DNA of 64,000 nt from Lytechinus pictus. Taxonomy: Eukaryota. Shown here in pieces: positions 15,511-24,965 of this stretch (positions are counted from its first letter, which is position 1; every line of letters starts with the position of its first letter). The DNA lies in the NCBI RefSeq assembly GCF_037042905.1, contig NC_087248.1:6014001-6078000 (forward strand), read 5' to 3'. The position numbers and the translations under genes were made by a program. The notes beneath the pieces are model-generated. The model was given only the letters and a program-made list of their open reading frames with translations, searched no databases and was not told the DNA's origin.

Positions 15511-17976
15511 TTATCCAATGATGCCACAAGCCTTGCGAACGCCATTTACAAGCTTCTTAACATCAGCTGTCTCATAGAGGCCATATTCCATGTCTTCTTC
15601 TGAAATCATCTCCGGAAACGCAACTGACATTCTATAGGCTAAACCAATTTTTAGAAAATAAAAAGGAGTTTTGCTAATACATCTGTAATACTAAATTGAT
15701 TCTAGTTAAGAGAGAAAAGAGCATCAGCATATCGATAAGATGTGACTTTTTCAATCAGATAAACGTGCTGTTTCGAATGGTCTTGACTTCCAAAAATCGG
15801 TAATGAAATCATAATGTTTAATTAATTTTCGGGGCAGAAGTTGGGGGATGATTAAAACTTCATAACATAACATCATGAACAAACATGTACAAAGAGCGAG
15901 TGATGTGAGTTCATCAGCCTGATATTATTGAACATCCCAGATATCTTGCAAAGAATAATAATAAACAGAATTGAACAATGGCAAAACAATGAAAGACTTT
16001 TGATGTCAGTTTCTATTTCAGTGTGCAATCTTAATATAATCTGACACTATTTACTCAAATCATGTTAAGTGACAATTACCCACACGGTGTGGGAAATGTT
16101 TCACAGAGTAAATGAAAGGGACTTGTAGGGTGTAAAAAGGACTTCGTTTGACAAAATTCGATTTTTTTTTATTTGATTTTGATTTTATTTGATTTCTGCA
16201 TTCATCAGCTTATGATAATCATGCAACATAAAACATTTCAAGTTTTACAAAACAATAATACAATAGTCATATAAGCATTGACAAATATTATTCACTTGAA
16301 AGAAAATATCATAGTTTAAAGGAATGCAGGAGACCGCCATCGTGAGCGATTAAGCTTGAAAATGATGGCGGCCTCGTAAATATTTTGTCAAACAAAGTCC
16401 TTTTTAATCCGTCAGTTACTTCAGCAAGTCAATTTTTTAAAGGTGAAGGTCTGACAAGTTGTCGGAAGAGATGTCAGTGAAACGCTCCCTGAATACCGTT
16501 TCACTGATGACAGTTGATGGCGCACTTACCTAAATCACGTGAAGGAATTTGATTGACGACATCACACCCAGATTTGACTCCTTTCTTTATGTCATTCCCG
16601 ATCGTCTTTCCTGCATGTTTCACCTTGTTGAAAGCCTTCTTAAACCAGTTCTGCAGCTCCACGTCATCCAAATCTAAATCATCATCTTCTGTAAGCATGG
16701 TAAGTAGAAGAGATAAATTGTATTGTCCGTCAGCTTCAAAATACCGGAATGATTTTTCCCTTATGATTAGACAGTCGCCATGACTATTCAATTTTCAGAC
16801 TAGCATTTAAAACCCATCTTTTTTCTAGTTTGTATGTACATAAAAAGCGTTTTGGGCCAAATAGGAAAGGCGCACACATCATAAATAATGCTTAATAATA
16901 ATTGTGTGAGAAATATTTTATATGCTTTGCGAATAGCACTTGTAAAATGAATTCGATGCATTTGTAATTATTCGAGACGATTGAGCCCCTGCACATTTTA
17001 TTACATAATCAAATATTGCACATCGACGAACAAAATGATTAATCAATGTACAAATGGGACAAAATATTGATCATTTTGTCGTACATTACTGATGAGAAAA
17101 TATGAGATTTAAACAGCTCTGGACGACAAATGTCCATCAAATACTCCCCAGAAAAGACTAACAGAAGACTAAAAGATTCGTCCTTACACCATGTATAATA
17201 TTATGCCATTATACTAAACTATCCCTTTCTCCTCATACCAACTCTCTCGCTCCCTAACCCCCCCCCCCTCACTCTAATTCTCCCTCTCTCCCCCTCTTAA
17301 TCATGTTAATACACACTCTCTCTATCTTTCTCTATCCATCCATTTATTATATCTATCTACCCCTCTCCGTCCCTCTTTCTCTCTTCGTATGTTCGTTTCT
17401 CCATATCATTTTCTCTCACACCCACCCCCTTCTCTCACCGTACTTGTCTGTGCGATGGTGTAAATATATATTATTTATTTATATTTTTAATAAGTGCTCA
17501 AAACTGATTCACAGGCTTGTACAAGTTAGAAAACAAAGATAAACTTTTGAAAGTGTTGGGTAATCTCATGTTTTGCAGCAATAAGATATTCAGATCTAAA
17601 CTCCATCGTATAATAAAGGAAATAAAGGAATGAACCTCAGGCTTTTTTTTTGTTTACATCGACAAATATGAAAACGAGTACAGAACAGGAAAAAAATATA
17701 TACATTAATAATTGTTATGGTATTTGCTTCATGTAAACATTCTTTGGAAAGTCGACAATTGCACTCCCTCTTTAGGTTTTGACCTCCAAGTACTTTTCCA
17801 TACATTTCCAGAAAGGGGTAACGAACGCACACTCAACCATTAATGTACAAAGTAAGGATTTTATTGATCTTACCAAGCATATCTTCAAGCATGTATTCAT
17901 CAAATTCTTCCTCATCATAACCATATCCCAACGACACTGCCAACGCCAAAGCTAGGAAGAAAATCGTCACCTTCAT
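15511..17976 (-). CDS. Centrocin-like antimicrobial peptide precursor A (129 aa); coding exons 17976-17874, 16688-16530, 15638-15511
   Basis: GT-AG phase-1 introns join to MKVTIFFLALALAVSLGYG-YDEEEFDEYMLEDMLEDDDLDLDDVELQ-NWFKKAFNKVKHAGKTIGNDIKKGVKSGCDVVNQIPSRDLAYRMSVAFPEMISEEDMEYGLYETA-DVKKLVNGVRKACGIIG*. Heavy chain resembles centrocin GWFKKTFHKVSHAVKSGIHAGQRGC. An alternative in-frame exon-3 acceptor (tcag) lies 15 nt downstream. Confidence 0.85.
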
Positions 17977-21788: not shown

Positions 21789-22446
21789 TACTTTTTGAAC
21801 TCAATCATTGATCATATGCACCGCTTCCAGTATTAAACGTATGAGCCCATTGAAATTAATTATTGTACCTAAGATTCTTTACATTGAAAGAAGACACGAG
21901 GGCTTGCTTATTTTACAAGCACTGCTTTCAGGCTTTTAGGCAAGCCTCCTCCGTTTTGTTACATCATTTTGTTTTCTTAGCTGAGTCTGATTCGTTCTTG
22001 TTAAATTGGGATGTTTTAAATTCAAACCTGAATTAATCACTGAATGATTTATTATTATACATTCATATTGTTATGTTTGATATCATTTTTGTAAATATTT
22101 GACTCTGTGGGCCTAATGTTAGTTTNNNNNNNNNNNNNNNNNNNNNNNNNNNNNNNNNNNNNNNNNNNNNNNNNNNNNNNNNNNNNNNNNNNNNNNNNNN
22201 NNNNNNNNNNNNNNNNNNNNNNNNNNNNNNNNNNNNNNNNNNNNNNNNNNNNNNNNNNNNNNNNNNNNNNNNNNNNNNNNNNNNNNNNNNNNNNNNNNNN
22301 NNNNNNNNNNNNNNNNNNNNNNNNNAATAACAAAAAAATCTTGGTGAATCCTATTAATTCTTAGTATTGAAATGAAACTTTATTGTTTTGCTTCAATGTT
22401 TTTTTTTTTTCGGGTTAAGTTCACATCAGCGGACTGTCAATTCATA

Positions 22447-24858
22447 ATGAACTACTCGTCGATTGTCATCATAGTGCTGCTAGCTGTGATCGGGTTAGAC
22501 CTCGGACAAGCTACTTACGATCATGACCTTGAATTTACAGAGGATGAGTTCCAAACTCTAATGGATATGATGGAGGGTAAGAGTTTTCTTTTCAACTTTA
22601 ACACCTTTGAATTTCAGATGGGAGGAGAGAACAACTGACTTTTATCATGGATAGAACAATGTAAACCCAAAACTAAGAGTGGGGTGGGCTGGCTTAAGTT
22701 TGCATTCATATCATAAATGAGAAAAACAGAAGAGGAAGAAAGAAATATGTTTATGTAAAGACTGAAGTAAAGGCAGAATAATAATTGGTGTTGTGGGTGT
22801 AAAACGACCGAGAGAGAGGGTCAGAGAGAGAGTGAGGGAAAAGTTGGATGATGGGGCGGCGGCTCCCTGTATGCTAGGTTCATAACCCACACGGAAAACG
22901 TATTTAATCTCCCTTACTTAAAATCATTATTTCAAGCTATACTGGAGACAGATAATGAAAACGTCAAGAATGTGCATAACGAAGAAACAAAACGCACACA
23001 CCAGCGACACGGTTGAGTTTTACAGATGTAAAACGATTTTGATTTGTAAGAACATAACTGAATGAAAGATTGATGAATGATTTTCCTGGTTTTAGTTTGA
23101 ATAATTGATTTGTACTGCTTACTGGTACATTGCATGTGCATATGCTCGACAAAGACCCTCATTTTTTTCAAAGCGCTGCAAGTTTCTTGTTCAATATTTA
23201 AACGATTGTAACAGATTCGGAGGCTGAACGCGATTGTTCTATTCGTTAGCATAAACACTATCATTTTGTTTTTGTTTTAATTATCTGTTATCTTTCTATT
23301 GATGTGTTGTTATATGATTGATATTTCATTACCTATTCATGTTTTACACTTAATGATTACCAGTTATCTGTTATTTTCTTTCTATTTTATTTATTGATTT
23401 GTTGTTTATATGATTGACATTAATTACCTCTTAAAACTGTAAACTTATATTCATACTTTGTTTCTATTTAAATTGATTATATTGCACTTGTTTTATTTAC
23501 GTTATGTTTAAATTGTAAAGCGCTGTATTGTATTAAGTTCTATATAAAAGCTCCATATTATCATTTATTATTATCATTTTATTTTCAATATCTTAACAAT
23601 TACAATAGATTCAGAGAATGAACGAGATGTGCGCCTCTCTAACTGGTTTAAAAAGGCATTTAATTCTGCCAAAGATTGGACGAAAAAGGCCGCCAGTGAC
23701 GCAGGGAAATGGACGAAGAAGGCTGCCAGCGATGCAGGAAAATGGACCAAAAAAGCCGTCAAAGACGCAGGCAAAGCAATCAAGAAAGGATGTGGATATG
23801 TCAACGAGATACCGGTAAAAGAACTTGGTAAGGGATTCTCTTTCCTGTATTTCTACTTTCAAAAGTCAAAATACAATGTCAAGATTCAGAATTTGATATT
23901 CATTTGCTGTCATTACAATTGGGCAAATTTTTATTTTCGTTTCTCAATCATTCAGTCTAACTCCTTTTCCAATTTTACTGATTCAGATAANNNNNNNNNN
24001 NNNNNNNNNNNNNNNNNNNNNNNNNNNNNNNNNNNNNNNNNNNNNNNNNNNNNNNNNNNNNNNNNNNNNNNNNNNNNNNNNNNNNNNNNNNNNNNNNNNN
24101 NNNNNNNNNNNNNNNNNNNNNNNNNNNNNNNNNNNNNNNNNNNNNNNNNNNNNNNNNNNNNNNNNNNNNNNNNNNNNNNNNNNNNNNNNNNNNNNNNNNN
24201 NNNNNNNNNNNNTGCTGATGATGACGATGTCAATAAATCATGGTGATGGAGATGATGATTATGATTAAGCGAAGGTTGCAATTATTGTCTGACAAGTTGT
24301 CATATCTGACAACTTTCCTTGATTTTGATTGGCCGAAAAGCGCAGGTGTTTGACTGTTGCGAAAGTAACTGCTGGATAAAACAAACTCTATATTGTCTAA
24401 TAAATTGTCTGACAAATCTTTTCAAGGAACTTCCCTGTGCCCATGCAGTCTTAAGAATTGTAATTGATTCGATTGATCTCAACTATGGAAAGTCAGCAAA
24501 AAAAATAGTTTTTAAGTGTTTTTTTAATTATGGCATAATATGCATGCAACGTTGTCTTAAAAAAATCAGTCCGCCTTTTCCCTTTCCAAGTGGATGATGC
24601 TGTGTACGTTTCCTACATGAATAATTATGACATCGGTGGCTTTCCATAGCTGATTTCAGTTTCAACCTAAAACATATAATATAAACGTGTAATAACATGA
24701 CAACAAATACTCAAATATACATTTTAAATATATTTTATTCAGTTTATCACAGAACGAAGGAGATGACAGAAGAAGAGTTTATGTCGGATGTCGACGAGGC
24801 TCAGCTAGCAGCAGCTTACAATGCTTTAAAATCAGGTTGCAAAATCATTGGAAAGTAG
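22447..24858 (+). CDS. Centrocin-like antimicrobial peptide precursor B (154 aa) with repeat-expanded heavy chain; coding exons 22447-22576, 23609-23827, 24743-24858
   Basis: GT-AG phase-1 introns join to MNYSSIVIIVLLAVIGLDLGQA-TYDHDLEFTEDEFQTLMDMMEDSENERDVRLS-NWFKKAFNSAKDWTKKAASDAGKWTKKAASDAGKWTKKAVKDAGKAIKKGCGYVNEIPVKELVYHRTKEMTEEEFMSDVDEA-QLAAAYNALKSGCKIIGK*. Same exon layout as gene A. An N-gap in intron 2 could hide further sequence; an alternative exon-2 acceptor gives a start at 23615. Confidence 0.85.
23644..23775 (+). repeat. Coding 33-nt tandem repeat (four 11-aa units each starting with Trp)
   Basis: TGG codons at 23644, 23677, 23710 and 23743; units WFKKAFNSAKD / WTKKAASDAGK / WTKKAASDAGK / WTKKAVKDAGK. 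Confidence 0.9.
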
Positions 24859-24965
24859 AAGGATGCACATCGACTTACTCTCCCTCTTTCAAATCAGGTG
24901 TCTCTATTATGCTACAATCTGACAGTCATACCAAGGAAACCGCCTGCAAACCGAACGATTGTTAC

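Follow-up and report, generated by a model that had tools for sequence, protein, structure and literature searches.

A transcribed centrocin-family gene of Lytechinus pictus with a predicted heavy chain lengthened by Trp-led 11-residue repeats

The question raised by a 64,000-nucleotide (nt) stretch of the Lytechinus pictus genome (the window: assembly GCF_037042905.1, contig NC_087248.1, positions 6,014,001 to 6,078,000) is whether a tandem array of Trp-led 11-residue units in one of its genes, here called gene B, is the extended heavy chain of an antimicrobial peptide (AMP), as the original prediction from the letters of the window had proposed. Gene B has three exons, is transcribed and belongs, on its sequence, to the echinoid centrocin family of two-chain, disulphide-linked AMPs. 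The layout and homology of its product support the proposed AMP heavy chain, as the heavy chain of a centrocin-type precursor. The repeat-extended centrocin heavy chain is what is new here; the centrocin scaffold is already known and this is not a new kind of system. A repeat-extended centrocin is not described in the centrocin literature searched, which consisted mostly of titles and abstracts.

The array is located in exon 2 of gene B. Units 1 to 4 were read directly from the sequence.

Starts at 23644, + strand: unit 1, WFKKAFNSAKD
Starts at 23677, + strand: unit 2, WTKKAASDAGK
Starts at 23710, + strand: unit 3, WTKKAASDAGK
Starts at 23743, + strand: unit 4, WTKKAVKDAGK
23644..23775, + strand: the four in-register 33-nt (11-residue) Trp-led units as a whole (Tandem Repeats Finder, reading and codon shuffles)
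23776..23808, + strand: a degenerate fifth unit without Trp, in register, AIKKGCGYVNE (sequence reading)

The four W codons and their common register are those originally predicted. The chain measures 51 residues from Asn to Cys; among them are 4 Trp, 15 Lys and 4 Asp, and the net charge is +11. The predicted length and the Lys and Asp counts are confirmed. Its sole Cys sits in the fifth unit (TGT at 23791-23793). Units 2 and 3 have the same peptide and differ at five synonymous sites (AAA/AAG, GCC/GCT, AGT/AGC, GAC/GAT, GGG/GGA), exactly those previously listed. Tandem Repeats Finder reports 3.0 copies of a 33-nt period at 23677-23775 (score 121). The in-frame self-identity of exon 2 at an offset of 33 is 0.525, against 0.287 +/- 0.034 in 5000 codon shuffles (z = 7.0; shuffle maximum 0.459). 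Unit 1 matches units 2-4 far less well (16/33 nt and 5/11 amino acids, aa). Judging from these sequences, unit 1 is the ancestral centrocin WFKKAF N-terminus and not a recent copy, while units 2-4 are the tandem repeat.

The coding exons of gene B are as follows, with the evidence for each given in brackets.

22447..22576, + strand: exon 1, encoding Met, a hydrophobic segment that resembles a signal peptide and the first part of the acidic propiece, and ending in phase 1 (transcript contigs)
23609..23827, + strand: exon 2, which completes the acidic propiece (SENERDVRLS), encodes the entire heavy chain and opens the interchain (IPVKEL) (contig joints)
24743..24858, + strand: exon 3, encoding the acidic interchain, the light chain with its single Cys (…EAQLAAAYNALKSGCKII), Gly-Lys and a stop at 24856-24858 (contig joints and translation)

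Both introns are phase 1. One transcript contig was obtained from X1 (study P1; 616 nt, depth 126) and one from X3 (study P2; 679 nt). Their blocks lie at 22430/22416-22575, 23608-23826 and 24742-24900, separated by GT..AG skips of 1032 and 915 nt (joints 22575>23608 and 23826>24742, each 'cut +1'). An exon 3 acceptor at 'cacag' was rejected, as an in-frame stop results; the contigs use 'ttattcag' at 24741-24742. The spliced coding sequence yields a protein of 154 aa (P0001), identical to XP_054752742 (LOC129258509) of L. pictus and XP_041461310 (LOC121412595) of L. variegatus. Both are 'uncharacterized' at NCBI, as are all of the centrocin-family proteins found here. Intron 2 contains a region, at 24222-24393 of the window, where depth runs into the thousands in all four RNA runs and where variant letters are numerous, as are loose ends and joints of the 'opposite strands' type. 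This is a dispersed, transcribed repeat with inverted structure.

Short tandem repeats are often misassembled, and the repeat exon of gene B is flanked by runs of N (22126-22325 and 23991-24212). The array might on these grounds be an assembly artefact, in which 33-nt units were over-collapsed or over-expanded and the true heavy chain is of ordinary length. Against this, exon 2 (23608-23826) is present in the contigs of both studies with 0 other letters and 0 gaps, and 100% of its sampled 31-mers occur in all eight runs, representing eight samples of two studies. Four units are also found in the independently assembled L. variegatus and S. purpuratus genomes. Because the array is present without mismatch in spliced transcripts of two studies, it is not an assembly artefact; this explanation, which the original prediction had named as the way in which it could fail, is refuted and retains only a vanishing probability. 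The repeat is real and is present in spliced RNA from independent material. No indel or copy-number variant of it was seen in the eight samples, where contigs drop rare variants.

What kind of precursor carries the array can be read from its layout. P0001 has a hydrophobic leader and an acidic propiece running to S54 (…ERDVRLS). Its heavy chain begins at N55-W56 and extends slightly beyond C105. Next come an acidic interchain (IPVKELVYHRTKEMTEEEFMSDVDEA) and a light chain, QLAAAYNALKSGCKII, that ends in CKII and is followed by the Gly-Lys end. The signal and cleavage sites were placed by analogy with the centrocins from a reading of the sequence. The only Cys residues, C105 and C149, fall one in each predicted chain. 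Both are invariant in 10 family members, as are W56 at the start of the heavy chain, G104, V108 and N109, and E135, Q137, A139, A140, Y142 and K146 in the light-chain region. Centrocin precursors have a signal of 20 residues, a propiece of 30, a heavy chain of 30-32, an interchain of 24 and a light chain of 15, with a C-terminal Gly-Arg that is removed, and the heavy chain alone carries the activity (PMC4805251). Centrocin 1 starts GW(Br)FKK, and its published heavy chain, from Strongylocentrotus droebachiensis, is GWFKKTFHKVSHAVKSGIHAGQRGCSALGF (PMC3561256). The centrocin heavy-chain sequences used for comparison were taken from the published papers.

The homology of gene B to the centrocins is seen through its paralogues. 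Comparison of A1 with the centrocin-like paralogue P0094 by hhalign gave 99.4% (E = 1.7e-21), and the homology of the repeat-bearing proteins to P0094 spans the heavy-chain end, the interchain and the light chain (BLASTP of P0001 against P0094, E = 6e-18). P0094 matches the S. droebachiensis centrocin 1 heavy chain with E = 3e-7. Gene B thus has the part order, the one Cys per chain, the early Trp and the homology of the family, and departs from it in not having a heavy chain of 30-32 residues. Given the shared architecture and the homology via paralogues, it is therefore a centrocin-family member lacking this one trait. No family was found for P0001 in Pfam at cut-off, in PHROGs at E <= 0.001 or in the ESM Atlas. 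A Moricin match to residues 86-111 (E = 0.0041) was rejected, since its 17.3 bits are below the cut-off of 27.6. A word-index search with the centrocin-like exon returned the L. pictus protein only, and no named centrocin.

Where the additional length comes from is indicated by the other members of the family. One of these lies in the window, head-to-head with gene B.

15511..17976, - strand: gene A, a paralogue with a single-Trp, 29-residue heavy chain, NWFKKAFNKVKHAGKTIGNDIKKGVKSGC (tblastn and sequence)
17976-17874, 16688-16530 and 15599-15511, - strand: the exons of gene A (splice sites from GT/AG and frame)

Gene A has a three-exon plan like that of gene B, and its exon 2 matches the S. 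droebachiensis centrocin 1 heavy chain with E = 8e-7. The head-to-head pair of genes A and B is kept in Strongylocentrotus purpuratus (locus L009). The 812-Mb genome has five further family genes: single genes on C13 and C16, and a tandem group of three on C11 that encodes the centrocin-like P0094 (heavy chain SWFSRAAHKVSHAVSHAARDVGHAVKKGC). Measured from the residue before the first Trp (Asn or Ser) to the Cys, the heavy chains form a series.

29 residues to Cys, 1 Trp: gene A
29 residues to Cys, 1 Trp: P0094 (C11, centrocin-like)
29 residues to Cys, 2 Trp: P0092 (C16)
40 residues to Cys, 3 Trp: S. purpuratus LOC115928446 and LOC105442346
51 residues to Cys, 4 Trp: gene B and S. purpuratus LOC105442769
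80 residues to Cys, 7 Trp: the C13 gene, in both Lytechinus species

The gene B heavy chain is 22 residues, or two hendecads, longer than those of gene A and the centrocin-like paralogues, because the 11-residue unit W-T-K-K-A-A/V-x-D-A-G-K has been duplicated in register. All of the lengths but the longest fit 29 + 11n, the longest being 80 = 29 + 4x11 + 7. The lengths of 29, 40, 51 and 80 across the family therefore indicate that length was changed by whole hendecads during echinoid evolution. The number of Trp also differs between related proteins: S. purpuratus P0089 is similar to the C13 protein of Lytechinus but carries four Trp, not seven, and P0090 and P0091 resemble the C16 protein but have three Trp, not two. 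The original prediction that length is tunable by repeat number, for which a copy-number survey had been suggested as a check, holds across paralogues and species but not within gene B, where four units are kept and copy number did not vary among the eight samples.

The three tandem genes on C11 (11129800-11164700) are spaced at approximately 16.5 kb and have near-identical exons, such that exon 3 matches score equally. The paralogue at C13:7236434-7237743 (LOC129273936) has seven Trp-led, His-rich units (WTHKAVHDSKH and similar), with one spacing of 7 rather than 11. NCBI lists two isoforms for it, 181 and 202 aa long, that have different propieces.

How long the gene B array has existed in its present form is evident from its orthologues. 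That of S. purpuratus, LOC115928299 (P0002), has the same four units, with units 2 and 3 again identical in protein; four units are present at 10851-10982 of L009 in S. purpuratus and at a second L. variegatus locus (L010). For Ser, the window, the second L. variegatus locus and S. purpuratus all use AGT in unit 2 and AGC in unit 3; for Asp, the window and S. purpuratus both use GAC in unit 2 and GAT in unit 3. Since these unit-specific synonymous codons are common to both genera, the duplications predate the split of Lytechinus and Strongylocentrotus, which is commonly dated to some tens of millions of years ago. Concerted evolution or gene conversion was rejected as the cause of the identity of units 2 and 3 on the same evidence.

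Between the window and S. purpuratus there are 50 synonymous and 23 non-synonymous differences over 109 codons, with omega, the ratio of non-synonymous to synonymous rates, at about 0.03 and synonymous divergence (dS) saturated. Within units 2-3 the counts are 10 and 0. Between the window and the second L. variegatus locus (exons 2-3) they are 14 and 0. That the array is held by strong purifying selection is well supported by these comparisons, which bear out the selection on the peptide that had been suggested from the window.

Two observations on the orthologous loci stand apart from this. In L. variegatus there are two loci for the gene B protein on one chromosome (LOC121412595 and LOC121412841), the second within L010 (CM031018.1:16856505-16878803), and this second locus could be a duplicate gene or an uncollapsed haplotype. 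In S. purpuratus, exon 1 of the orthologue (L009:9886-10016, Spur_5.0) is 2 nt longer than in Lytechinus, so the frame of the leader ATG meets a TGA just before the donor; the NCBI model XP_030851247 begins at an internal Met and has no signal peptide. The 2 extra nt may reflect a true indel, an allelic difference or an error in the sequence.

Such strong conservation could also be expected of a peptide that is not antimicrobial, for instance one that is secreted or kept in granules, binds lipid or serves in packaging, and has an endogenous partner. The low omega and the 0 non-synonymous differences from the second L. variegatus locus favour this, as does an apolar face of low hydrophobicity like that of perilipin-type coat helices. 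It is opposed by the high cationic charge of the chain, and by its full-length homology to, and shared architecture with, the centrocins, whose heavy chains are the antimicrobial part. A non-antimicrobial role is therefore considered unlikely.

The next question is whether the 51 residues could act as a single helix. Their hydrophobic moment is maximal at 98.0 degrees per residue, where it is 0.57 (z = 7.1 against shuffles), compared with 0.47 at 100 degrees. In an 11/3 register the spokes around the helix are W / A / A / T / A(V) / G / K / S / K / K / D. In this arrangement the four Trp line up as a straight stripe along the centre of a shallow face of Ala and Thr, with Lys on both edges and Asp8 one turn from Lys4. 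On an 11/3 helix the local moment keeps its direction within 158-176 degrees, whereas on a 3.6-residue helix its direction moves by 78 degrees, from 169 to 247. The prediction that an 11-residue period keeps the amphipathic face unbroken is upheld by this peak and by the constant direction. AlphaFold2 (AF2) models the isolated chain as a single helix over residues 2-54, with a mean predicted local distance difference test score (pLDDT) of 82.9.

The repeats could instead be those of a polyprotein, the units being cut apart, for example after each Gly-Lys, to free short Trp-led peptides that may be amidated. Near-identical units are typical of multi-copy precursors, and the G-K that ends each unit before the next W resembles a monobasic amidation or cleavage signal. 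However, dibasic K-R or R-R spacers are absent, and the canonical centrocin heavy chain contains K-K and was nevertheless isolated intact (PMC3561256, PMC4805251). In addition, one helical register runs through the units to a single Cys, the predicted partner of the conserved light-chain Cys, and a 98-degree moment peak across 51 residues would be needless for 11-mers. Cleavage into units is accordingly very unlikely.

Another possibility is that the Trp-led hendecads self-associate as a straight or right-handed coiled-coil bundle, a packing already suggested for the W-marked 11-residue repeats of phage tape measure proteins, the chain acting as an oligomer (a pore or fibre) and not as a surface monomer. 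A phmmer search with exon 2 returned 78 cluster representatives (P0004-P0080 among the matches), among them tape measure proteins of phages, C-termini of RHS toxins, a secreted protein of the wasp Eretmocerus hayati, a Nematostella protein of 2552 aa and transcripts from marine protists. In this set, which is biased by selection with the query, the Trp-spaced units share with the urchin unit A5 in 83%, D8 in 66%, T2 in 39% and G10 in 39%. No Pfam repeat model for W-T-x-x-A-A-x-D-A-G-x was found in those of the matched proteins that were scanned. Tape measure proteins carry variable numbers of 11-residue Trp-marked repeats (PMC3271669). The sharing of W1, A5 and D8 with this documented repeat favours a coiled coil, and Ala-rich faces favour close helix packing. 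On the other hand, the chain carries a net charge of +11 and Lys along both flanks, which works against self-association in solution; P0001 has no PHROG or Pfam family match; and the likeness is limited to a short, low-complexity repeat and is probably convergent. As P0001 matches no tape-measure profile, the likeness is read as convergence; the oligomeric reading is kept alive as an unlikely alternative.

Taken as a whole, the best explanation is a repeat-lengthened centrocin whose heavy chain is a long, membrane-acting helix, and this is considered reasonably probable. Processing like that of the centrocins would yield a heavy chain of approximately 56 residues joined through Cys105-Cys149 to a light chain of approximately 16 residues, the latter possibly with pyroglutamate at the invariant Gln137 and amidated via the Gly-Lys end. 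A pyroglutamate and an amide have been reported for EeCentrocin 2's light chain. On anionic membranes the heavy chain would fold as one cationic, surface-lying helix of approximately 8 nm with 11/3 periodicity, anchored at the interface by its Trp stripe, which may be 6-brominated, and stabilised by K4-D8 pairs. Every Trp of the EeCentrocin heavy chains of Echinus esculentus is 6-bromotryptophan (PMC4805251), and four bromo-Trp in the gene B chain are therefore plausible. The added units would raise the charge (to +11) and the membrane avidity. The heavy chain would be the antimicrobial part, with the light chain as a disulphide-linked cap as in the centrocins; the membrane action and antimicrobial activity are both proposed by analogy with that family. 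Repeat number would then be the family's means of altering chain length over evolutionary time.

Several points weigh against this explanation. It is predicted from sequence and models, and the cleavage points are set by analogy alone. Compared directly, P0001 matches the S. droebachiensis centrocin 1 heavy chain only weakly (E = 0.004), so that centrocin membership, for which the case is indirect but strong, rests on intermediates. The omega value is unusually low for an immune effector. No reads fell on the gene B exons in the deep total-RNA runs X21 and X22, of which approximately 6% each was read; expression of gene B is therefore not ubiquitous, an observation that is uninformative on tissue. 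Single-sequence AF2 tends to favour helices for such peptides, and the model of the whole precursor from a 10-row alignment is poor (pLDDT 47), its heavy-chain helix being broken at residues 75-80. The helical-wheel and structure predictions that had been proposed as a check thus agree with the original prediction in the register face and the isolated-chain helix, but not in the model of the precursor. The Gly in each unit could be a hinge, and with its weak apolar face (Ala, Thr, Gly and one Trp per unit) the chain might bind ordinary bilayers poorly.

Among known systems, gene B is most like centrocins 1 and 2 of S. droebachiensis and EeCentrocins 1 and 2 of E. esculentus. Like them, it has a heavy chain that starts x-Trp (WFKK[A/T]F) and carries one Cys near its end, a light chain with one Cys, an acidic propiece and interchain and a Gly-basic end, with the parts of the prepropeptide in the same order. 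It differs in having 51 residues to the Cys, where they have 25-27 (published heavy chains of 30-32 aa, PMC4805251), and in having four Trp at exact 11-residue spacing, the extension being a tandem hendecad repeat.

The cecropins and moricin are single chains of 35-42 residues and are not known to have internal repeats. Gene B resembles them in its positive charge, its richness in Lys, its N-terminal Trp and the amphipathic helix predicted for it, but its Moricin match was below the cut-off and it is not a member.

The likeness to tape measure proteins lies in the variable count of 11-residue units with a lead Trp, Ala 5 and Asp 8, and in a length that evolves by gain and loss of units. Occasional 11+7 spacing is seen both in tape measures and in the seven-Trp urchin paralogue (PMC3271669). 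Tape measures, however, belong to the virion, have 600-2500 aa and lack both a leader and Cys pairing, while gene B is a spliced animal gene with a leader peptide. On this sequence evidence the likeness is probably convergence on a hendecad helix.

Repeats of 11 residues form helices with 3.67 residues per turn on lipid surfaces in apolipoproteins, synucleins and perilipins (PMC6164224). Gene B resembles these and the group 3 late embryogenesis abundant (LEA) proteins in its 11-residue period and its moment near 98 degrees. It also resembles them in the small residues of the buried face (Ala, Thr, Val and Gly), the interfacial Lys and the expectation of a long helix on a lipid surface (PMC6164224). 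It is unlike them in having no sequence homology by Pfam at cut-off, in being secreted, much shorter and strongly cationic, with a Trp per unit, and in its predicted disulphide to a second chain. The 11/3 families offer an analogy of mechanism only.

A wider proposal, which is tentative and rather unlikely, is that the Trp-led hendecad is a general helical 'ruler' module that has been reached repeatedly, in tape measures of phages, tails of RHS toxins, secreted proteins of protists and insects, and urchin AMPs. It would give echinoids brominated-Trp membrane helices of approximately 4, 6, 8 and 12 nm, whose length sets their selectivity or killing mode. If this is true, the family is a natural length series for a question that is usually studied with synthetic peptides. 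The centrocin scaffold at 29, 40, 51 and 80 residues, with one to seven possibly brominated Trp, in any case provides a series already tried by evolution, in which the influence of helix length, of charge and of the number of Trp or bromo-Trp on the potency and selectivity of amphipathic AMPs can be studied. At least seven 'uncharacterized' Lytechinus genes, and their S. purpuratus orthologues and relatives, gain a family and a testable function, and AMPs are linked to the 11/3 lipid-binding helices of synuclein, the apolipoproteins and the perilipins.

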